Of a DNA stretch of 64,000 bases, positions 8,020-60,885 are shown one piece after another. The stretch comes from Mobula hypostoma (Eukaryota). The stretch lies in the NCBI RefSeq assembly GCF_963921235.1, contig NC_086112.1, positions 42,532,001 through 42,596,000 of the forward strand. The letters are read 5' to 3'. Position 1 is the first letter of the stretch. Each line of letters opens with the position of its first letter. A program made the translations under genes and the position numbers. A model generated the notes under the pieces. That model saw only the letters and a program-made list of their open reading frames with translations, was not told the DNA's origin and searched no databases.

Positions 8020-8280
8020 AACTCCCTGGGCCTCCTGTCCCATGATCCTCTCATATCCCTTTTGCCAATCACCTGTCCAGCTCTTGGCTCCATCCCTCCC
8101 CCTCCTGTCTTCTCCTATCATTTTGGATCTCCCCCTCCCCCTCCCACTTTCAAATCTCTTACTAACTCTTCCTTCAGTTCGTCCTGACGAAGGGTCTCGG
8201 CCTGAAACGTCGACTGTACCTCTTCCTAGAGATGCTGCCTGGCCTGCTGCGTTCACCAGCAACTTTGATGTGTGTTGCAA
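8020..8280 (+). mobile_element. Penelope-like 3' terminal repeat with hammerhead core
   Basis: Near-identical to the reverse complement of 40207-40470; contains CTGACGA...GAAACGTC. Confidence 0.75.
8181..8214 (+). ncRNA. Minimal type-I hammerhead ribozyme motif
   Basis: gtc-CTGACGA-a-gggt-ctcg-gcct-GAAACGTC-gac: core boxes, stem II, palindromic ACGT stem III, short stem I; predicted cut after C8211. Confidence 0.7.
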
Positions 8281-8653
8281 GAGTATTAACTTTATGGTTC
8301 TACTATTAATCTGATATTCTTTCAGTAGATCCCTTTTCTTTCTCCTATCCACATCATTAGCTTCAGTGAGGATGACACTGGAGTGAGATCTCCAGTAGAT
8401 TTTCCCCTGCCATACCGTTTCTGACCAGACCTAAGGAGACTTCTTTAACTTTGGGAGGCAACATAGCCTTTAGGTCACATGCCCGCAGATCCACAGAACA
8501 GTACCCAGTTTCTTAGCTAGTCACTTGAACGTTCCCTTCCATTCCCAATATTTGAAGGACACTTGTACACAATTGTGTGTTCAGTTTATTCATGCGCTCT
8601 TGGACAGGTTCCAGGCTCTAAGGCACCTCCAACCTTATCTTCTATAAAGGAAC

Positions 8654-8686
8654 AGTCGACGTTTCAGGAACCCCTGCATCAGAACT
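8654..8686 (-). ncRNA. Variant minimal hammerhead motif
   Basis: Minus strand agtt-CTGATGC-agg-ggtt-cct-GAAACGTC-gact; A9 is replaced by C. Confidence 0.45.
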
Positions 8687-10221: not shown

Positions 10222-10431
10222 TAACACCCAAAATGCTGGAGGAACTCCGCAGGCAGCATCTATGGAAAAGAGTAAACAGTCGAGGTTTCGGGCCTGATGA
10301 AGGGTCTTGGCCCGAAACGTCAACTGTACTTCTTTCCATAGATGCTGACTAGCCTGCTGAATTCCATCAGCATTTTGAGTGTGTTGCTTGGGTTGACGGC
10401 ATCTATAGATTTTCTCTTGTTTGTGAGAAAT
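10222..10431. mobile_element. Fold-back Penelope-derived element with hammerhead core (10294-10321, +)
   Basis: The left arm is the reverse complement of the right arm (tgctggaggaactc...gcatctatggaaa vs tttccatagatgc...gaattccatcagca). Core CTGATGA-a-gggt-cttg-gccc-GAAACGTC. Confidence 0.75.
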
Positions 10432-14048: not shown

Positions 14049-15333
14049 CAGTGCTTGTAAAAAGTATTCACCCCCGCCTTGGAAGTTTTCAGGTTCTATA
14101 GTTCTACATTTTTTGACACTGAACTTCAGAAAAAGACTCTTTCATGTCAAAGTGAAAACAGATCTCTACAAAGTGATCAAAATTAATTACAAATATAAAA
14201 CATAAAATTATTAATTGCAGAAGTATTCACCCCTTCAAGTCAGTATTTAGTAGATGCATCTTTGGCAGCAACTTGAGTCTGTGTAGATAGGTCTCTATCA
14301 CGTTTGTACATCTGGACACTGCAGTTTTTCCCCCATTCTTCTTTACAAAACTGCTCAAGCTTTGTCAGATTGCATGGGGATCATGAGTGAACAACCCTTT
14401 TCAAGTTCAGCCACAAATTCTCAATTGGATTGAGGTCTGGACTCTGACTTGGCCACTCTAGGACATTAACTTTGTTGTTTTTAAGCCATTCCTCTGTAGC
14501 TTTGGCTTTATGCTTGGGGTCATTGTCTTGTTAGAAAACAAATCTTCTCCCAAGATGCAGTTTCTTGCAGACTGCAGCAGGTTTTCCTCCAGGATTTCCC
14601 TGTATTTTGCTGCATTCATTTTACCCTTTTCTTTCACAAGTCTTACAGGGCCTACTGCAATGAAGCATCCCCACAGCATGATGCAGCTACCACCATGCTT
14701 CACGATAGGGATGGTGCTTTTTTGATGATGTACATAGTGTTTAGTCTGATGGCAAAGGCCTTAATTTTGATTTCATCAGACAATAGAACCTTCTAGCTGA
14801 CTTCAGAGTCTCCTACATGCCTTCTGACAAACTCCAGCCGAGATTTCATGTGAGTTTTTTCAATAGTGGCTTTCTCTATGCCATTCTCCCATAAAGCTGC
14901 AGCTGGTGAAGCACCCAGGCAACAGTTGTATGCGTGGTTTCTCCTATCTCAACCACTGAAGCTTGTAACTCCTCCAGGGTTGTCATAGGTCTCTTGGTAG
15001 CCTCCCTCACTCATCCCTTTCTTGCATGGTCACTCTGTTTTTGAGGACTGCCTGTTCTAGGCAGGTTTACAGCTATGCCATATTCTTTCCATTTCTTGAT
15101 GATGGACTTAACTGTACTCTATGGGATATTCAGTGACTTGGACATTTTCTTGTATCCACCTTCTGACTTGGAGTTGCTTGGAGTGCTCTTTTGTCTTCAT
15201 GATGTAATTTTTGCCAGGGTACTGACTAACCAGCAGTTGGACCATCCAGATATAGGTGTATTTTTACCACAGCCAGTTGAAACACCTTGACTGCACAGAG
15301 GTGTCCAAAACCAGATCTCCATTTAACTAATTA
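14049..15333 (-). mobile_element. Tc1-like DNA transposon (IR/DR type), degraded and truncated
   Basis: TA|CAGTG...AAGTATTCACCCC terminus, with the motif repeated at 14221; transposase KHGGSCIMLWGCF; homologous to 62887-64000. Confidence 0.85.
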
Positions 15334-22795: not shown

Positions 22796-25700
22796 GAGGG
22801 GTTTTCAAGATGGTGCAGTGAAAGGTCTGTTTTGCAGAGCTCAGCATCGCAACACTGATAATTTCGCATATAAACCTGTCCGTTTCAACTTTTTTTTTTA
22901 AATGCCCAAGTGTCAGATTTAATAACATGAACATTGAGTTTTTTTTTTGAACTGCTTCACCGTGACATCGAAAAGTACTAGAAAGGCGGCCAAGATGGAC
23001 TACACAGAGCGCCTGCCTGGGGTTGAGGAGCTAGCTGCTGCTAGCTATGCTAACACGTTGGACCCTGCTTTTTGTCAAGTAATTCTGGAAGTTACGGAGA
23101 ACATATCCAAAATGATGGACAAGAAGCTGTGTCCACTCTCTCTAACACTCCAGTACCACACGATGGAGCTTAAAAATCTTGATACAAGAACGACCGAGGC
23201 CAAGACTGTAGCTGATCAAGCCCAAAGCCGCATCCGGGCGCTAGAAAAGCAAGTTCAAAGCCTGTCTGACCATATCAATGAGTTTGAGAATATAGGTAGG
23301 AGGGAGAACATACGGATCATTGGTCTACCTGAAGGTACAGAAGGCAGCCAGCCAGCGAAGGTTTTTGAGGGCTGGCTGCCTAATTTACTTGATTTGGAAA
23401 CCAAGGCTGGACGCATTAAAGTGGAAAGAGATTGTACGCTGGCTCCAAAACTGGGCTCAGACCAACGCCCTTGACCTGTCCTCGTGCACTTCCATAATTT
23501 TGGTGATAAGCAATGAGTGATCGAGGCTTTGAGACGCCGTGGGACTGATGCCCAGGCTTTAATATATGAGGGATCCAGGCTTACGTTTTTTCAAGATTTT
23601 TCAGCAGCCATTATTCAGAAGTGCAAGGAATTCAACCAGGTAAAGAAGCGGCTAAAAGAATCTGGAATCCAGTACTTTATGCTGTACCCAGTGGAACTAA
23701 AAATCACCTACACCAAGATATTTGATTCTCCTGACAAAACTAAAACTTTTGTAGACACATTGGGCTAAAGAATGTATATATATTGTGTAGCTCTGGTTAT
23801 GGACAATAACATGCTCGATGGTGTCTTTATTTTACCTTTTCATTACTCGACGGCAAGATATAGGATGGGTAACGTGTTTTGATTAATACAGTTTCATTAT
23901 TTGTTTAAATTAGCGGTGCTGCTCCAACCTGAAGGCGCTTAAACATGATGGTAACAAATCGGTGGATTGATAAATTATGTCCTGTTTTCATTTTTGACTA
24001 TGTTAAATGCCATATTGGCAGTAGGGCAGAATATGGGGTGCTAGAAAGTTCAGATATCCCCTTTAAGTGTGGGTTTATCCTCTTGTTCAGCGCTGTTGGT
24101 GCTTTGTTTTTTTTTGTGTGTTTTTTTAATTCACTTCTTGCTGCTCAGCTGATCTTAAGTCAGGTTTCTTCTCCTTCGGAGTCACATGATTGTTATAAAG
24201 GGTTATGACCAGTAACATATAAAAATTGTGCACTTGGAACATTAAGAGGAGTCATTCACCAATCAAGAGAAAGAAAATCCTATTAAACCTGAAAAAGGAA
24301 AGAGTAGACATAGCCTTGCTGCAGGAGACACATTTAAATGATAAAGAACATCTAAAGCTGCAACAGAGTGGATTTGATTGTCTATTTTTCATCTTTTAAT
24401 ACCAGGAGTAGGGGGGTGGCCATTTTAATAAGGAAGAACCTAGCTTTTAAGTTATTAGACTGCATTAAGGATAAGTATGGGAGATTTGTGATTGTTAAGA
24501 CTTCAATATATGGAGAGGATTATGGTATTCTCAATGTTTACTGCCCTCCAGCTCATCCTCTCAAATTCCTAATAGATGCTTTTTCCAAACTTACAAGCTT
24601 TTCAATACAAAACATTATTGTAGGTGGGGATTTTAATTGTCTCATGGACCCATTGATGGACAGAGTGCCTAGTGGTCCCCCATTACTTTCACAGTCCAAA
24701 CAAATCATGGGCTTATGTGGAGAACTAGGACTTGTGGATAGCTGGAGGTTGTTACATCCCTCAGACAAAGACTTCATTTTTTTTCTAATCCACACAAGTG
24801 TTACACCAGAATAGACTTTTTCTAACCCTCAAAACGCTCCTCGATTTAGTTGTATCCTTTACAATTGGAAATATCGCTCTTCCTGACCATGCAGCAGTAT
24901 ATTTAAATATTAAGCCGAAAGATAATGCAGCACGATCTAGACATTAGAGGCTGAATCCTTTTATTCTAAAAGATAATAAATTTATAGACTACTTCCGAAT
25001 TCAAAACTTCCCTATCTATTAATTCCAAATCAGCTAGTAGTCCATCGATGCTCTAGGAAACCGCTAAGACCTATGCAAGAAGACTAATTATCTCCTACTC
25101 TGCTAGTAAAAAGCGACAAGTTGCGGATCAGCAGCGCCTAGTGGAAGCAAGGCTTGTGGCAGCTAGGAAGGATTATATTAATAAGCCTTCCGCAGCCATG
25201 TTACAGAATATCACAGCCCTATTCTGTACTCTTTACTTACACAAGCAGCCAAAAGAAAATTGACGTTTACTAAATGATTGTTTGAACATGGTGAAAAACC
25301 AGAAAGAAAAATGCCTCTCGGATTATTGCTTCAATTAGGGATGGGACAGGAGCCCTCACTAGTAATTCTAAAATGATTAATGTTGTGTTTAAGAATTTTT
25401 ATTGTAAATTGTATCAATCTCAGCAATGTAATGATGGACAATCTAGGATGGAGTCCTTTTTCAGAAATTTAGATCTCCTAGACATTTCTTCTGAACAAGA
25501 GTCCCTCCTCAATGCTCCCTTATCTATACATGAGATACAGGAAGCTGTGAGACAGATCCAAGGTGGGAAGGCCCCTGGTCCTGATGGACTCACTAGTGAA
25601 TTCTATAGAGTTCAAAGGGTTATTATCAGAGCCTATGCTAAACATGTTCAATCATGCATTTAATTGTGGTCTCCTCCCACCATCATTGAGAGAAGCTGTA

Positions 25701-28169
25701 ATTCTTAAGAAAGGAAAGAGCCCTGAAGATTGTGCCTCCTACAGGCCTATTTCATTGTTAAATGTTGACTTTAAAATCTTAACTAAAACCTTAGTGTTGC
25801 AATTAGAAACTGTTACCTTTTATCATGAAAGAGGATCAAATGGGTTTTGTAAAAGGCCGTAGATCATCTAACAATATCAGAAGATTACGTAATGTGATTC
25901 AGGCATGTCAGCAATGGGCAGTGGATGGCTTGGTGGTTTCCTTAGATGCACAAAAGGCCTTTGATCATGTCGAATGGTCGTATCTTTTTCTCACTTTAGA
26001 ACGAGTTGGTTTGGGCAATAATTTTATTAATTGGGTAGAGGTTCTTTATAAATACCCTTTGGCTGTGATCCTCACTAATGGTATTAGGTCGGATAATTTT
26101 AGTATTCTGAGGGGCATCCGGCAGGGCTGCCCTTTATCACCACTACTATTTACACTAGTGATCGAACCATTGGCTGAGGCTGTTCGGCGAGACCCCAAAG
26201 TATCTGCTCCAGGCATAGGACTCAAGTCACATAAAATTACATTGTATGCGGATGATGTTATAATTTTCTTATCAAACCCTGCTATATCAGTGCACCACCT
26301 TATACAATGCATCAATTCATTTAGCACCTTTTCAGGTTATAAAATCAACTTTACTAAATCAGAGGCTATGCCTCTGGGGAATGTGTAGCAGGTATCTGAC
26401 ACTCGGGGTGTTTTCCCCTTTAAATGGCCGCAGACAGGTTTTGTTTACTTAGGCATATTTATCACACCTACGTTTGATCAATTGTTCAAAGCCAACTTTA
26501 CACAGTTATTTGACAAAATCAAACAGGATCTTGAGCAATGGAGCACTCTTCCCATTTCTTGGCTTGGCCGAACATCCTTGCTCAAAGTGAACATTCCTCC
26601 TCGTCTGCTCTACCCAGTACGAATGATTCCAGTCATTTTTACCCAACAAATACTTTGAAAAAAAATGACTGGTTTGTTTCTTTCATCTGGAACAAAAAAA
26701 AGACCCTGCATTAAAATGTCTAAGTTACAGCCTCCCAGTAGTCTAGGGGGTCCGGATTTTCCAGACGTCAAAAAATATCAATTTTTTATCTTATGTGGTT
26801 GACTGGGTTTGCAGGGACCCCTCCTCAATTTGGCTAGACATTAAAGCTTCACAAGCAAAATGCCCTCTTATTAATTTGCTTTTCCTCAATAAGATGAAAC
26901 TAGTTAAGTAATATTGTCACAATCCAATAACAATTAATACAGTCAGGGCTTGGAGGTCAGTGCGACAAATTGAGGGCAACACAGTGAAAATATCACCCTT
27001 CATTCCAATAACTGGCAGTCCAGATTTTCAGCCTGGCATAATGGATTCTAGATTTAAACTTTGAATTTCTAAGGGTATTTTCCATCTTGGAGATTTGTTT
27101 GATGAAGGAATGATGATGTCGTTTAGTCAAATAGTACAGAAATTTAACATTCCCAACAAGGATCTTCGTTTCTTTCAGATAAGAGATTATATACAGAAAA
27201 AAACATCATTGTTAACTGATTTCTATAGTTCTGACATAGAAAATAGAGTGTTTTGTTCTAAGGGTGAAGTCTCCATCAGTACTTTTTACAGCATCCTGAG
27301 GGAATGTTCTTGTGGAGAGGCTGAGTAGCTGGGAAGGGTCTGGCAGGAAGAGTTGGGAGTAGAAATTGCAGCTGAAATATGGGAAGACATCTGTGATAAT
27401 GCAAAGAAAACTTCAGTTTGTAATAGAACTAAAGCACTGCAACTCAAAATTCTGCATAGAGCCAATCTGACTCCAAGTCATCTCTCGAAAATTAAGACTG
27501 GTTTCTCCAATGTGTTCTAAATGTAAAGTAAATACTGGAACTTCCACCCACTATTTTTGGACTTGTCCCAAACTTCAGGCATACTGGAGTGATATTTTGG
27601 GTCAAATAGAATTGATTCTGAAGATGGAGCTTGAACTGGACCCAGTGTCTTTTCTCTTAGGCTTACCCAACAGTCGTATTATTAATGCACATCAGAAAAA
27701 ACATTTTTAACATCCTAATTTTTTTTGTGCAAGGAAGAACATTTTACTTTGTTGGATATCCGATAAGGCCCCTGGACTTTTTGGTTGGTATTAATTAATC
27801 ATGGAATACATTCCTTTGGACTTTTTGACATGTATGGTACACTCAAAAACAAATAGTTTTCATAAAACAAGGCGACCTTTTCTGCAGTATGTAGATGTAA
27901 ACCTGTCTGCTATACTAATAAGGGCTTTTGTATAGGATGTTGGGGTGATGTCTATAGTTTGATGGAAGTTTTCTGATTGTTGATATCTGTGAGGGGAAGA
28001 AATGTAAATGTATCTGTAAATTGAAAGTTTTGTTATGCTGAGCAAAAAAAAATTTTAAAACTACATTTTAACGCTGCAAAATACATCTCGAGATAAAAAA
28101 ACTTAACTCTTGACATTGTTAATGATGTTATTGAAGGAGGAATAAATACTGTTCAGACTTCAAAAAAAA
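22796..28169 (+). mobile_element. Full-length L1-clade LINE (5.4 kb), inactivated
   Basis: TSD GACTGCTTAA at 22786-22795 and 28170-28179. ORF1 (RRENIRIIGLPEG) about 22900-23768; ORF2 from 24205 with LQETH, GGDFN, YRPISLLN, RQGCPLSP, LYADD and a Cys-rich C-terminus. AATAAA at 28141 plus an A8 tail. Many stops and frameshifts. Confidence 0.92.
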
Positions 28170-34332: not shown

Positions 34333-36050
34333 AGTCTCACCAATGGAAACAACTTTCCTACTTCTATCTTATCTATCCCTTTCAAAATTTTGTATGTTTC
34401 TATAAGAGCCCCTCTCATTCATCTGAATTCCAGACAGAATAGTCCCAGGCAACTCAATCTCTCCTCATAGGTTAACTACTTCATCCCTGGAATCAAGCCA
34501 GTATATCCTTTCTCAAGTATGGAGACCAGAACTGTACACAGTACTGGAGGTGTGGCCTCACCAGTACCCTGTATAGTTGCAGCATGACCTCCCTGCTCTT
34601 GAATTCAATCCCTCTAGCAATGAATGCCAACATTCCATTTGCCTTCTTAATAACCTGTTGTACCTGCAAGCCAACTTTTTGTGATTCATGAACAAGCACT
34701 CCCAAGTCCCTCTGCACAACAGCATGCTGCAATCTTTCACCATTTAAATAATAATCTTCTCTTCCATTCCTTCCAAAGTGGATGATCTTGCATTTACCAA
34801 CATTGTATTCCATCTGCCAGACCTTGGCCCACTCACTTAACATATCTATATCCCTCTGCAGACTCTCCACATCCTCTGTACAATTTGCTTTCCCACTCAT
34901 TTTAGTGTCATCAACAAATTTTGCTACGCACTCAGTCTCCTCTTCCAAATCATCAATGTAAGTTGTGAACAACTGTGGGCCCAGCACCGACCTCTGCGGC
35001 ACCCCACTCACCACTGACTGCCAATTGTAGAAACATCCATTTATACCAACACTCACAACACGCCGGAGGAACTCAGCAGGTCGGGCAGCATCTGTGGAAA
35101 TGATCAGTCAACATTTTGGGCCGGAACATTGATCGTTTCCACGGATGCTGCTCAACCTGCTGAGTTCCTCCAGCGTGTTGTGAGTGTTGCTTTGACCCCA
35201 GCATCTGCAGGGTATTTTGTGTTTACCCATTTATACCAACTTTCTGCCTTCTATTGGTTAACTATCCATGCTAACACAGTTCCTCTGACTCCATACATCT
35301 GTATCTTATTTATAAGTCTCCTGTACACCTTATCGAATGCCTTCTGGAAATTCAAGTATACAACATCCACCTGTTCCCCTCTATCCACTGCACTCATTAT
35401 GTCCTCAAAGAACTCCAGTAAGTTTGTCAAACAGGACCTGCCCTCTCTGAATCACTGCTGTGTCTGTCTAACGGAACCACTCCTTTCTAAATGTTTCGCT
35501 ATTTCTTCCTTAATAACAACTTCAAGCATTTTCCCAACTACAGATGTTAAACTAACAGGCCTATAGTTGCCTGCCTTTTGCCTACATCCTTTTTTAAAAA
35601 GTGGCTTGACATTTACTGTCTTCCAATCCACCGGGATCTGCCCAGAGTCTAGAGAGTTTTGATAAATGATTGCCAATGCATCTACTATAACCTCCGCCAA
35701 TTTCTTCAGCACCCTGGGATGCATCCCATCAGCACCAGGGGATTTATCTACCTTCAGACCCTCTAGTTTGCTCATCACTATCTCTTTAGTGACAGTGAAT
35801 TTATCGAGGCCCTCACCTCCCATTTCATCCATAACATCCTTCTTTGGCATATTAGATGTGTCCTCCACTGTGAAGACTGACACAAAACAGTCGTTCAATG
35901 CCTCAGCCATTTCCTTATCACCCAATATCAATTTCCCCTTCTCGTCTTCCAAGGGACCTACGTTGACTTTAGCCACCCTCTTGTGCTTTATGTATTTATA
36001 AAAAAAACTTTTGCTATCTGGTTTTATATTTTGTGCAAATTTGCTGAACT
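34333..36050 (-). mobile_element. Second CR1 subfamily copy (RT), internally deleted
   Basis: ORFs 35452-35976 (KSPGADGMHP, NYRPVSL) and 34493-35056 (GVPQRSVLGP, KFVDDT). Confidence 0.85.
35051..35226. mobile_element. Fold-back Penelope-derived element with 14-bp TSD
   Basis: TSD CCATTTATACCAAC at 35037-35050 and 35227-35240; about 60-bp inverted arms; inserted inside CR1 RT sequence. Confidence 0.85.
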
Positions 36051-41060: not shown

Positions 41061-41595
41061 CATATATGAAGAGGAATTTAACAGTAGCCACTAGTTAGGA
41101 TAACTTAAATTGCAAACACATTATAGCTTGTGTTGATTGGCCAATGGAAAATTGTTGACATCTAGGCCATGAATTCTGCAGGAAGAGCTGCAACCCTATC
41201 ACAACAGGATCTTACCTTTTAATGTAAATAGTTTAGCTTGCTGCACTGCAACTTCACTGTAGCATTTAATTATAAAACAGATTAGTCCAAGTATGTTAAT
41301 ACTCATATTAATGAGACATTTTATAAACCATTGGTTATAGTGATTAAAAGGACCTCAATGGTGACACCAGGTTCTTGAGCAAGCTAGCATAACATTTAAT
41401 AATGAATCATTAGTGGAAGACAAATCTTGTGAGCAGAAGCAATTTTATATCATTCCAATTAAAAACAGCTAAACAGAGACAGATGTTTGTCTAGTTTAAT
41501 TACTAACCAGTCAACTTTTGCTGTCAGTTTCTCATCTGGCAAAAGTATAAGGAATCTATCCTCAAGCAAAATATACACGAGTTTAGTTTACCTAG

Positions 41596-41601
41596 TTTAT
41601 T
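41596..41601 (-). terminator. Candidate HNRNPK polyadenylation signal
   Basis: AATAAA on the minus strand about 370 nt after the stop codon. Confidence 0.5.
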
Positions 41602-41967
41602 TTAAAAACCATAAAATGTTCCTTACAAAACAAGATTGCATTCTGCACATGTACTGAATGGATCTGGCACATTTAAACTACCAGTACTATTGTCCATAAA
41701 CAGTGTACATCTTATGTTACCATAGATACAGGAAATACAATAAACCACTGAAACATTTAGAACAAAACAAAGCCCAGAATCCACTCCACTTTTGGAAAAT
41801 TCGAACTGTCTAAGCTGTAAGGTTCACTAATTAAAACATTACAAATGATCAAAAGCTGAATATAATCATTGCTTCCAGTGTGATCTAAGTAAGCAGAGGA
41901 ATGTTGGCTCTTCAAACAAAAGCAGTGACAAAAAAAGCAGCGATCCTTCAATCTTCTCCGCTTTGTT

Positions 41968-41998
41968 TTACAAGAACTGCCCAGAGTACTGCCTCACA
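41968..41998 (-). CDS. HNRNPK: hnRNP K terminal coding exon (SVRQYSGQFL*)
   Basis: Acceptor cttttctttcacag; resembles the mammalian SVKQYSGKFF tail. Joined CDS is 1239 nt = 412 aa. Confidence 0.92.
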
Positions 41999-42037
41999 CT
42001 GTGAAAGAAAAGACAGAATTAAGACTTTGGAAGCCAT

Positions 42038-42068
42038 TTACAAGTCCCTCAGCTTACTTTGACCCACA
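42038..42068 (-). CDS. HNRNPK: Candidate alternative hnRNP K C-terminus (SVGQSKLRDL*) from an acceptor 70 nt upstream
   Basis: ttgtcttttgcatttaagttag|TGTGGGT...TTGTAA; same length, start (TGTG) and end (TTGTAA) as the canonical tail. Confidence 0.5.
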
Positions 42069-42260
42069 CTAACTTAAATGCAAAAGACAAGCCATCAGCC
42101 CTTGGTTTAAAGTTTACATCTCCTTACAATCTACTGGTGTAAGGAACTTCATGATAACAGGTCCATACTACACTCAAATTATACCTAATCCTGACCAGAA
42201 AACACTATCTGACATTAAAAACAAACTGTGCTCTCACAGCATGCATTTAAAACAATTCAC

Positions 42261-42595
42261 TAGTGCTGGGTCGAAATTTTGATATACTGAACTTCTAAAG
42301 GAAATATTTGCCTTCAGAGGTCAATAGCAATATTGCACACCCAATTGTTCACAAATTCAATTCCCCAAAATTGACCCTTTCCACCACCAAAACAAAAACG
42401 TTCCCGCTACCAAACTGACCTTTTCTCGTGTGGAGCTGCGGTATCTGAACGCACGGGTCAGCTTAAGGGCGCAAAGCGGCTGCTGTAGCTGCACTGGGGA
42501 GAAACCAGGTAAAAAAAAATAAACTAATTTGACCAAACATTTTTGTTTTCAATGAATGTTCGGATGCGAGTGCAGATCAATTCGACCCAGCACTA
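42261..42595. repeat. Perfect 15-bp inverted repeat bracketing a candidate exon
   Basis: TAGTGCTGGGTCGAA at 42261-42275 and TTCGACCCAGCACTA at 42581-42595. Confidence 0.9.
42420..42493 (-). CDS. HNRNPK: Candidate 74-nt cassette exon giving C-terminus SAATAAALRP*
   Basis: Acceptor tttttttttacctggtttctccccag, donor AAG|GTCAGT, in-frame TAA at 42465-42463; CpG-retaining sequence inside an AT-rich intron. Confidence 0.6.
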
Positions 42596-42715
42596 AAATT
42601 TCAGTTAACCAAAGCTTGTGTATATGAAAGGACAGCACAGCAAGATGAACAGAAAATGGTAGTTTGCTGTTGCAGAACTTTTGAGAATTAAACTTATTGG
42701 AACAAAAGTTCTTGA

Positions 42716-42818
42716 GAGGTATGATCTGCGCTATATGGCAGACTGTGATTTGTTGTCAATCCAACTGTCCAAAACAACAAAATCACTAGTCTTCCACACA
42801 GAACCAGACCAAATTCCA
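42716..42818 (-). ncRNA. MIR7-1: miR-7-1 precursor hairpin in the last HNRNPK intron
   Basis: 5p arm TGGAAGACTAGTGATTTTGTTGTT at 42796-42773; 3p arm CAACAAATCACAGTCTGCCATA at 42755-42734; established host-gene position. Confidence 0.97.
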
Positions 42819-43095
42819 AGTTGACTGATCTTCTATGCTTACATAGCACAGGCAATGAAATCTCATTGAACATTAACTAGTGATAGCAAATACAATGGGA
42901 TTCACAAAAAGGCACTTTTACAATTAAACAGCAGATACCATTTGTGGAATTTGTTGCATTAAAGCAGGTCAAATTTAACATTAAAAGCAGAACTAGGAAG
43001 GTTCAGAAATTTGAAAAGTGCACAAGTCAGAGTGCAGCATGTTAAGGGCAGAGCATATCATTACTGTTAAACAAACCATTCAATGTTATTAGTTA

Positions 43096-43266
<171 letters not shown>

Positions 43267-59261: not shown

Positions 59262-60472
59262 AGAACTATGAAAATGGACAAGGGAGAGCCAGTGGATGTA
59301 GTGTACCTGGACTTTCAGAAAGCCTTTGATAAGGTCCCACATAGGAGATTAGTGGGCAAAATTAGAGCACCTGGTATTGGGGGTAGTGTACTGACATGGA
59401 TAGAAAATTGGTTGGCGGACAGGAAACAGAATAGGGATTAACGGGCCCCTTTCAGAATGGCAGGGGGTGACTAGTGGGGTACAGCAAGGCTCGGTGCTGG
59501 GACCGCAGCTATTTACAATATACATTAATAATTTAGATGAAGGGATTAAAAGTAACATTAGCAAATTTACAGATGACACGAAGCTGGGTGGCAGTGTGAA
59601 ATGTGCGGAGGGTGTTGAGATAATGCAGGATGACTTGGACAGGTTGGGTGAGTGGGCAGATGCAGTTTAATGTGTATAAATGTGAGGTTATCCACTTTGG
59701 TGGCAAGAACAGGAAGGCAGATTACTATTTGAATGGTGTCAAGTTAGGAAAAGGGGAAGTACAACGAGATCTAGGTGTACATCAGTCACTGAAAGCAAGC
59801 ATGCAGGTAAAGCAGGCATTGAAGAAAGCTAATGACATGTTGGTCTTCATAACAAGAGGAATTGAGTATAGGAGCAAAGAGGTCCTTCTGCAGTTGTACA
59901 GGGCCCTGGTGAGACCACACCTGGAGTATTGTGTACAGTTTTGGTCTCCAAATTTGAGGAAGGACATTCTTGCTATTGAGGGAGTGCAGCGTAGGTTCAC
60001 GAGGTTAATTCCCGGGACGGCAGGACTGTCATATGTTGAAAGATTGGAGCGACTGGGCTTGTATACACTGGAATTGAGAAGGATGAGAGGGGATCTGATT
60101 GAAACATATAAGATTATTAAGGGATTGGACACGCTAGAGGTAGGAAACATGTTCCTGATGTTGGGGGAGTCCAGAGTCAGAGGCCGCAATTTGAGAATGA
60201 GGGGTAGGCCATTTAGAATGGAGTTGAGGAAAAACTTTTTCACCCAGGGAGTTGTGGATCCGTGGAATGCTCTGCCTTAGATGGCAGTGGAGGCCAATTC
60301 TCTGGATGCTTTCAAGAAAGAGTTAGATAGAGCTCTTAAAGATAGCGGAGTCAAGGGATATGGGGAGAAGGCAAGAACGGGGTACTGATTGTGGATGATC
60401 AGCCATGATCACAGTGAATGGCAGTGCTGGTTTGAAAGGCCGAATGGCCTACTCCTGCACCTATTGTCTATT
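59262..60472 (+). mobile_element. 5'-truncated CR1
   Basis: DFQKAFDKVPH, GVQQGSVLGP, KFTDDT, RPHLEYCVQFWSP and 3' UTR. Confidence 0.88.
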
Positions 60473-60479
60473 GATTTCC

Positions 60480-60885
60480 CCGATTCTGGTGGAAAGAATA
60501 TGACCACCTTATTGATATTCCTTATGATTACATAAACTTCTTTGAGATCAACCCTCATTCTGCACGCCAGGAACTAAAGATCTAGTGTGGCCAACCTCCC
60601 CCTACAACTCAGACCCTCTAGTCCAGGGCACCATCCTCGTAAATCCCTTCTGCACCCTCTCCAGCTTGACAATGTCTTTACTATAATAGGGTGACCAAAA
60701 CTGTACACAATCCCCAAGTGTGTCCTCACCAAAGGCTTTATAGCTGCAACAAAAGATCTCAGTCTTGAACTTGATGCCTTGACTGATGAAGGCCAGCATG
60801 CTAAATAATTTCTGACCTCTTCTGTGGCCACATTCAGTGAACTATATACTTGTACTACCAGGTACCTCTGTTCCATTACACTTGA
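60480..60885 (-). mobile_element. Older CR1 3' fragment
   Basis: MLAFISQGI...CVQFWSPYY. Confidence 0.7.

Follow-up and report, generated by a model that had tools for sequence, protein, structure and literature searches.

The window, the 64-kb stretch of Mobula hypostoma DNA analysed here, is free of N and shows CpG depletion of the vertebrate type, and its minus strand carries the 3' end of the HNRNPK gene of this batoid. hnRNP K is a major regulator that binds RNA and DNA, and HNRNPK hosts mir-7 in all jawed vertebrates examined. Four features define the C-terminal end of the gene in the window:

43097 to 43266, minus strand: HNRNPK KH3-domain exon of 170 nt, ending CAAAACAG|gtaact (AACAG|gtaact)
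42722 to 42811, minus strand: full-length pre-mir-7 hairpin in the intron between the KH3 exon and the last exon, assigned to Rfam family RF00053 with 85 bits (E 4e-17) against a gathering score of 51.8
42420 to 42493, minus strand: cassette exon of 74 nt, with the acceptor at 42494|42493 (ccccag|TGCAGC) and the donor GAAAAG|gtcagt
41968 to 41998, minus strand: start of the last exon, read as S-VRQYSGQFL-stop if the cassette exon is skipped and as 3' UTR if it is included

The translation of the KH3 exon ends with ...QYLLQN and matches hnRNP K proteins; skate transcripts align to it from 43266 to 43097 and reach the last exon from 42000 downwards. The KH3 donor at 43097 is the upstream donor common to all three C-terminal variants described below. 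A search of 41950-43150 against Rfam at a permissive threshold returned mir-7 and look-alikes, and no snoRNA or other family. In the region of the last intron, the window shares 91% identity with Pristis pectinata and 88% with skates.

An alternative C-terminal exon in the mir-7 host intron

An earlier note on this DNA had singled out a 74-nt segment of the intron by its strong acceptor, its donor, its retained CpGs and its in-frame stop, and each of these is found (ccccag|T, AAG|gtcagt, six CpGs and the stop). A long pyrimidine tract lies on the 5' side of the exon, and the observed/expected ratio of its CpGs is 0.99, compared with 0.33 for the whole intron. Splicing of the KH3 exon to the acceptor at 42494|42493 reads S-AATAAALRP-stop, with the stop ending 43 nt ahead of the next junction, that of the cassette donor. 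Inclusion of the exon thus replaces the last ten residues of the protein, SVRQYSGQFL, with SAATAAALRP or, from a second acceptor at 42489|42488 that gives S-YSSRFAPLS-stop in the window, with SYSSRFAPLS. Both of these tail types are annotated in relatives. The two acceptors stand in tandem, 5 nt apart (cag|TGCAG|CTACAG, 42488-42493, minus strand), so that one exon supplies two tails of ten residues. The third frame of the exon is open as well, and one whale-shark gene model (P0062) reads that frame as the tail. A search of the protein database with the 59-aa open reading frame that spans the exon (42536-42360, minus strand) returned no candidates.

Protein searches and cluster listings sorted the C-termini of the hnRNP K isoforms of cartilaginous fishes into three classes. 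The first, ...LLQNSAATAAALRP, is the tail predicted from the window, with the variants ALRT in skates, ALRS in catshark and Mustelus and SAASAAASRP in Heterodontus; the second, ...SVRQYSG(Q/E/H)FL, is the exon-skipped form; and the third is ...SYSSRFA(P/H/L)LS. SAATAAALRP or a close variant ends about 40 annotated isoforms from about 17 shark and ray species, and a tail of this class belongs to isoform X1 in Hypanus/Hemitrygon, Cetorhinus, Amblyraja, both Scyliorhinus species and Pristis. The SVRQYSGQFL tail is annotated in Heptranchias, Narcine, Pristiophorus and Amblyraja. Among the relatives of M. hypostoma, individual species have both an inclusion and a skipping isoform annotated, which makes the cassette exon an alternative one.

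The junctions predicted by the earlier note, 43097->42493 and 42420->41998, have their counterparts joined in skate RNA. Ten Logan RNA-seq contigs from skates (L001-L010) consist of the KH3 exon, the cassette exon and the last exon in this order; they align to the window at 43266-43097, at 42496-42420 and from 42000 downwards with 95-97% identity, and their junctions read ...CAAAACAG|TGCAGC...GAAAAG|TGTGAGGCAG. In all, the inclusion form was found in at least 13 skate RNA-seq assemblies. The evidence for sharks consists of protein tails, and in Callorhinchus two cDNA-derived proteins (AFM85585 and AFK11166) use the homologous exon, with the tail SCSSFFMTS. The cassette exon, whose usage is documented in relatives of M. 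hypostoma, is therefore real and alternatively used in cartilaginous fishes, in the frame in which it had been predicted, and it is already contained in the RefSeq models of many species. The word "hidden", which had been applied to it, does not fit an exon that is part of isoform X1 in several species and is carried by at least 13 RNA-seq assemblies. The proposed escape of its isoform from nonsense-mediated decay (NMD) fared better: with 43 nt from the stop to the last junction and an NMD rule of 50-55 nt, the reasoning is sound, and the cassette isoform probably escapes NMD.

Two complementary intronic boxes and their conservation

The cassette exon, together with its acceptor and donor, lies between the two arms of a perfect 15-nt inverted repeat (TAGTGCTGGGTCGAA / TTCGACCCAGCACTA; 42261-42275 and 42581-42595), which a repeat search recovered where the earlier note had located it. 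The arms are 305 nt apart, so that a stem formed by them would close a loop of about 305 nt containing the exon and both of its splice sites. The elements of this putative stem are:

42581 to 42595, minus strand: 5' arm UAGUGCUGGGUCGAA, 87 nt upstream of the cassette acceptor and identical in five chondrichthyan species
42576 to 42580, minus strand: UUGAU extension of the 5' arm, pairing in batoids with AUCAA at 42283-42279 after a 3-nt bulge
42261 to 42275, minus strand: 3' arm UUCGACCCAGCACUA, 144 nt past the cassette donor and 262 nt short of the last exon

The 5' arm follows the Rfam match to mir-7 at a distance of 126 nt, close to the 120 nt or so given before. The UUGAU extension overlaps a conserved box, UGAUCUGC (42579-42572). 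Its proposed pairing with AUCAA holds in batoids and does not extend to Callorhinchus, where the extension reads UAGAU; it thus lies outside the conserved core. A nested A/U-rich repeat (42549-42536 / 42402-42389) was set aside, as both of its halves are missing in Callorhinchus and it has a mismatch in skates.

First-order Markov simulations of the window yielded 0.18 perfect 15-mer inverted-repeat matches within 1 kb, and the real window holds about seven loci with such repeats, most probably derived from transposons. With about seven such loci in the window, the repeat by itself is not special in this genome; what sets it apart is its conservation across species. This was examined by comparing the window with the genomic loci of Pristis (L011), Leucoraja (L012), Amblyraja (L013) and Callorhinchus (L014), and both arms proved to be 15/15 identical in all five species, in agreement with the conservation expected in related species by the earlier note. 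Among the batoids, identity is about 97% over the entire stretch that starts at mir-7 and runs to some 45 nt beyond the 3' arm, so that arm identity within this group carries little weight and Callorhinchus is the informative case. Its intron measures 1562 nt, compared with 1098 nt in the window, and its arms are 240 nt apart instead of 305 nt. Along the intron, the identity between the window and Callorhinchus varies as follows:

pre-mir-7: 96%
spacer from mir-7 to the 5' arm: 56%
5' arm: 100%
5' arm to cassette acceptor: 70%
coding part of the cassette exon: 48%
post-stop part of the cassette exon: 88%
129 nt before the 3' arm: 36%
40 nt before the 3' arm: 47%
3' arm: 100%
25 nt after the 3' arm: 60%

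Exact matches of at least 11 nt between the two introns are confined to the mir-7 arms, the block around the 5' arm, the pyrimidine tract, two pieces of the exon, the donor and 42275-42261. The 5' arm sits inside a larger conserved block of about 75 nt, which may owe its conservation to something other than the duplex. In the downstream intron, the donor apart, the 15 nt at 42275-42261 are the sole exact match of this length, and the borders of the match equal those of the arm. When k-mers of at least 8 nt common to the five introns were counted in the style of IRBIS, the ones whose reverse complement was also common belonged to the mir-7 stem and to the arms, and to nothing else; the arm pair held up to k = 15 and no further. 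At the level of sequence, the arms are thus as conserved as miR-7 itself. Within the exon, the coding part is the least conserved and the post-stop part is among the most conserved, which points to constraint on the cassette exon at the RNA level rather than on its peptide.

The earlier note had considered that conserved pairings in mammalian HNRNPK might already be reported; the gene in the window is that of a batoid, not a mammal, and the one bony fish compared lacks the exon and the arms. In the sterlet locus (L016, without gaps), neither arm was found even when three mismatches were allowed, and the 74-nt exon is absent; mir-7 lies in the same intron, only about 230 nt from the last exon. 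The bird locus (L015) was left out of the comparison, its last intron being an assembly gap (24193-26379). On present data, the unit of exon and arms would thus belong to Chondrichthyes.

The conservation bears on two explanations that dispense with pairing. We give almost no credence to a chance inverted repeat devoid of function: perfect 15-mer inverted repeats within 1 kb do occur at about seven loci of the window, but both arms are invariant in five species, in an intron whose surrounding sequence is 36-60% identical to that of Callorhinchus. It is also quite improbable that the 15-mers are conserved for reasons other than mutual pairing, either as two sites for a sequence-specific protein or as a regulatory element at the DNA level, their complementarity being a relic, for instance of the terminal inverted repeats of an ancient MITE that brought in the exon or framed it. 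The genome is rich in inverted repeats, the arm begins with TAGTG in a hAT-like manner, and the 5' arm lies within a wider conserved block, all of which would suit such an origin. Against it, the island of conservation at the 3' arm begins and ends precisely where the complementarity does, and a protein site used in both orientations would present two different sequences on RNA. Moreover, an unselected transposon end would not have remained 15/15 identical since the split of rays and chimaeras, and the arms occur once each in the four other cartilaginous-fish loci (12-19 kb) and have no second copy in the 64-kb window.

A MITE was accordingly rejected as the present-day explanation and kept as a possible origin: the unit has no other copy and no target-site duplication, and it holds the orthologous position in five species. 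The many copies of a 335-bp hAT-type unit that the earlier note had named as evidence against its reading were encountered neither in the 64-kb window nor in the four loci. A search of the window for a second copy of the 460-bp unit likewise gave none, all look-alikes of the arms elsewhere having three mismatches. The flanks of the arms, TGAAATTT and GTGAATTG, do not form a clean target-site duplication, though an ancient one could have decayed. Matches of a 19-mer, TTTTAGTGCTGGGTCGAAT, to two metagenome contigs were dismissed as chance matches, the contigs having nothing else in common with the window.

Other perfect inverted repeats of at least 15 nt within 1 kb are located at 1179-1251, 8201-8668, 10254-10347, 35047-35189 and 59928-60711; overall, inverted repeats of this length are about 35 times as frequent in the window as in the Markov simulation and are presumably transposon-derived.

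Predicted folding and a candidate role in splicing

The 15-bp duplex has a predicted energy of -27.2 kcal/mol, and in the predicted fold of the 381-nt unit (z = -2.35) the arms pair with each other. Partition-function folding was also applied to the whole intron plus 30 nt of flanking exon at either end (1.16-1.62 kb, four species). The minimum-energy structures contained 14-15 of the 15 arm pairs, and the mean pair probability of the arms was 0.985 in the window, 0.955 in Pristis, 0.983 in Leucoraja and 0.957 in Callorhinchus, where the arms pair despite a 240-nt spacer of different content. The RNAalifold consensus of five species keeps the arm stem. It contains no covariation in the arms, all 15 pairs being invariant in the five species, so that the case for pairing comes from conserved complementarity and not from compensatory change, the invariance by itself speaking neither for pairing nor against it.

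A second predicted structure covers the cassette donor:

42410 to 42466, minus strand: local hairpin over the 5' splice site of the cassette exon, in which exonic UUAAGCUGACC (42466-42456) pairs with GGUCAGUUUGG (42420-42410)

This hairpin is part of the five-species RNAalifold consensus and reaches -23.2 kcal/mol in a single-sequence fold of 76 nt. Donor positions -1 to +10 are paired in it (within GGUCAGUUUGG). A 1-nt deletion in skates and Callorhinchus removes a bulged C, and one pair is broken in Callorhinchus. According to the folds, the hairpin would probably weaken the cassette donor and make the exon tunable.

The reading that we favour, and consider rather probable, is that a conserved loop-out duplex tunes the inclusion of a C-terminus-switching exon in chondrichthyan HNRNPK. 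The intronic 15-nt boxes would pair in the pre-mRNA (about -27 kcal/mol) and place the exon with both of its splice sites on a loop of about 305 nt. Once formed, the duplex would bring the KH3 donor and the acceptor of the last exon close together, disfavouring the cassette exon, and skipping would give the SGQFL tail; with the duplex open, or not yet formed during transcription, the cassette exon would be included. The hairpin over the cassette 5' splice site would probably add to the tuning, and the duplex would set how much of the SGQFL tail is made relative to the SAATAAALRP and SYSSRFAPLS tails. The data show the exon and its use, and a conserved potential for the duplex; from these we infer pairing in vivo, an influence on splicing and the direction of the effect. 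For the direction we rely on human exons looped out by conserved complementary regions, which show lower inclusion, the more so with stabler structures (PMC8052449); the duplex is read as lowering inclusion on these grounds. Several species have the inclusion form as their isoform X1, and 13 skate RNA-seq assemblies contain it, so the duplex is not expected to be a strong silencer. It would be a modulator at most, and perhaps a kinetic one, because the 3' arm is transcribed about 220 nt after the acceptor.

The same usage data could be turned the other way. The duplex may be functional but act in the opposite direction or at another step, which we regard as unlikely: compact presentation of the exon on the loop, or its insulation from the mir-7 part of the intron, would promote inclusion, or the duplex might govern the order of intron removal or the back-splicing of the 74-nt exon. 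That the inclusion isoform is X1 in several species and was assembled in 13 skate RNA-seq runs would agree with promotion. Inverted repeats flanking an exon are the geometry of circRNA-forming exons, which is the geometry found here; a single-exon circle of 74 nt would, however, be unusually small, and the data at hand show no back-splice junction. The lower inclusion of looped-out human exons (PMC8052449) speaks against the opposite direction and for the loop-out reading.

Together with the adjacent conserved box the arms might serve miR-7 biogenesis and not exon choice: box UGAUCUGC would compete for GCAGAUCA (42730-42723), the 3' strand of the basal stem of pri-miR-7, and the duplex would decide whether the box is accessible. 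The one structural hint at a coupling to miR-7 is the complementarity of the box to this strand, recovered in the repeat search; an A/G difference in GCAGAUCA retains pairing with either partner, the box region GATCTGCACTCGCAT is an exact 15-nt match to Callorhinchus, and the arms are as conserved as the miRNA. Nevertheless we hold such a role to be very improbable. The helix comprises just 8 bp over a distance of about 140 nt, for which we estimate a chance expectation of about 0.1 per intron, so that the complementarity of UGAUCUGC and GCAGAUCA may be due to chance, and RNAalifold favours the ordinary basal stem. The sterlet, furthermore, has mir-7 in the same intron with neither arms nor box, which argues that miR-7 processing does not need them.

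A two-state switch, to which we likewise attach very little probability, would combine the two roles: the box UGAUCUGC would either join the long-range helix through UUGAU/AUCAA, as in batoids, or invade the basal stem of pri-miR-7 via GCAGAUCA. If this were true, one fold would decide both exon choice and Drosha cropping and so link the C-terminus of hnRNP K to the output of miR-7, and such a switch would predate the split of rays and chimaeras, persist in cartilaginous fishes and be absent from bony fishes.

Relation to known splicing systems and C-terminal variants

Bony-vertebrate hnRNP K proteins that were compared have other tails, for example ADVEGF, and the human ADVEGF tail presumably results from splicing to an alternative acceptor a short way ahead of the last exon. 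The mammalian isoforms (...SVKQYSGKFF and ...SVKQYADVEGF) resemble those of cartilaginous fishes in that they arise by splicing after KH3 in the region of the mir-7 host intron and have tails of similar length. Unlike the mammalian tails, the tail of cartilaginous fishes is encoded by a separate 74-nt cassette exon, which has its own stop, is bracketed by the predicted duplex and is absent in the sterlet. Vertebrate lineages thus differ in the gene structures by which they arrive at the same result, a choice of two or three short C-terminal tails for hnRNP K, and cartilaginous fishes swap theirs by means of a cassette exon of their own.

The predicted hairpin over the cassette donor belongs to a known type, represented by MAPT exon 10 and by TSL2 of SMN2 exon 7. 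As in these, the donor (-1 to +10) is embedded in a local hairpin, here kept in five species; unlike them, it is a predicted and secondary feature in HNRNPK, with one pair broken in Callorhinchus.

Long-range pairing has closer parallels. In human genes, pairs of conserved complementary regions (PCCRs) loop out cassette exons (Kalmykova et al. 2021, PMC8052449; IRBIS, PMC4174434). The HNRNPK unit resembles human PCCRs in its two conserved intronic boxes flanking an alternative exon, in its stable predicted duplex and in the lower inclusion expected from it. It differs from them in that it is present, as far as compared, in cartilaginous fishes only, in that its arms are invariant and have no compensatory substitution, and in that its pairing is a predicted one. 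The main text of the PCCR catalogue paper (PMC8052449) makes no mention of HNRNPK, and our literature search found no paper on the cassette exon or the duplex in cartilaginous fishes. Exon 3b of BRD2/BRD3 is controlled by intronic complementary regions (PMC10789245), and ATE1 is governed by competing long-range structures (PMC7797038). Long-range intronic pairing, a regulated exon and a lineage-specific structure on a conserved gene are common to these systems and to HNRNPK. Unlike the HNRNPK unit, BRD2/BRD3 and ATE1 have the support of mutagenesis, and their structures govern a poison exon or mutually exclusive exons; the HNRNPK exon changes the C-terminus of the protein and probably escapes NMD, and the role of its duplex is a predicted one.

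The class of mechanism is well known, and the duplex-bracketed exon of HNRNPK is most likely a new, unusually clean and old example of it: an exon framed by a 15-bp complementarity that has been conserved like a miRNA across the history of the whole group. If the pairing acts as proposed, it would provide a compact natural case of long-range RNA structure in splicing, made up of one 335-nt unit with two 15-mers, in a system outside the usual mammalian and insect models. For the field such a result would be useful and not surprising, as mechanisms of this type are established and RefSeq models already include the exon.

Three further observations concern the ends of the host intron and the last exon. 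An additional tail, S-VGQSKLRDL-stop, can be read at 42038-42068 (minus strand) if splicing uses a putative acceptor, ttag|TGTGGG, some 70 nt ahead of the last exon, and this tail has no counterpart among about 330 hnRNP K proteins compared. The site may be related, in decayed form, to the upstream acceptor of TGTGA type in bony vertebrates, and the sterlet has tag|TGTGATGGATG... at a comparable place. Over the first 500 nt of the last exon (41500-42000, minus strand, mostly 3' UTR), the window shares 95-97% identity with skate transcripts and about 82% with Callorhinchus, which far exceeds the background of the HNRNPK introns. The donor of the mir-7 host intron (43095-43096) is GT in the window and in three other batoids, and GC (AACAG|GCAAGT or GCGAGT) in Callorhinchus (L014, about position 14569), the sterlet (L016, about 19700) and the bird (L015, about 23976); read-through tails of the form NRQV or NRHV suggest a GC donor also in the whale shark, many teleosts and birds. 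With GC in Callorhinchus, sterlet and bird and GT in the batoids, the GC-AG form of the mir-7 host intron looks ancestral and appears to have switched to GT in rays.
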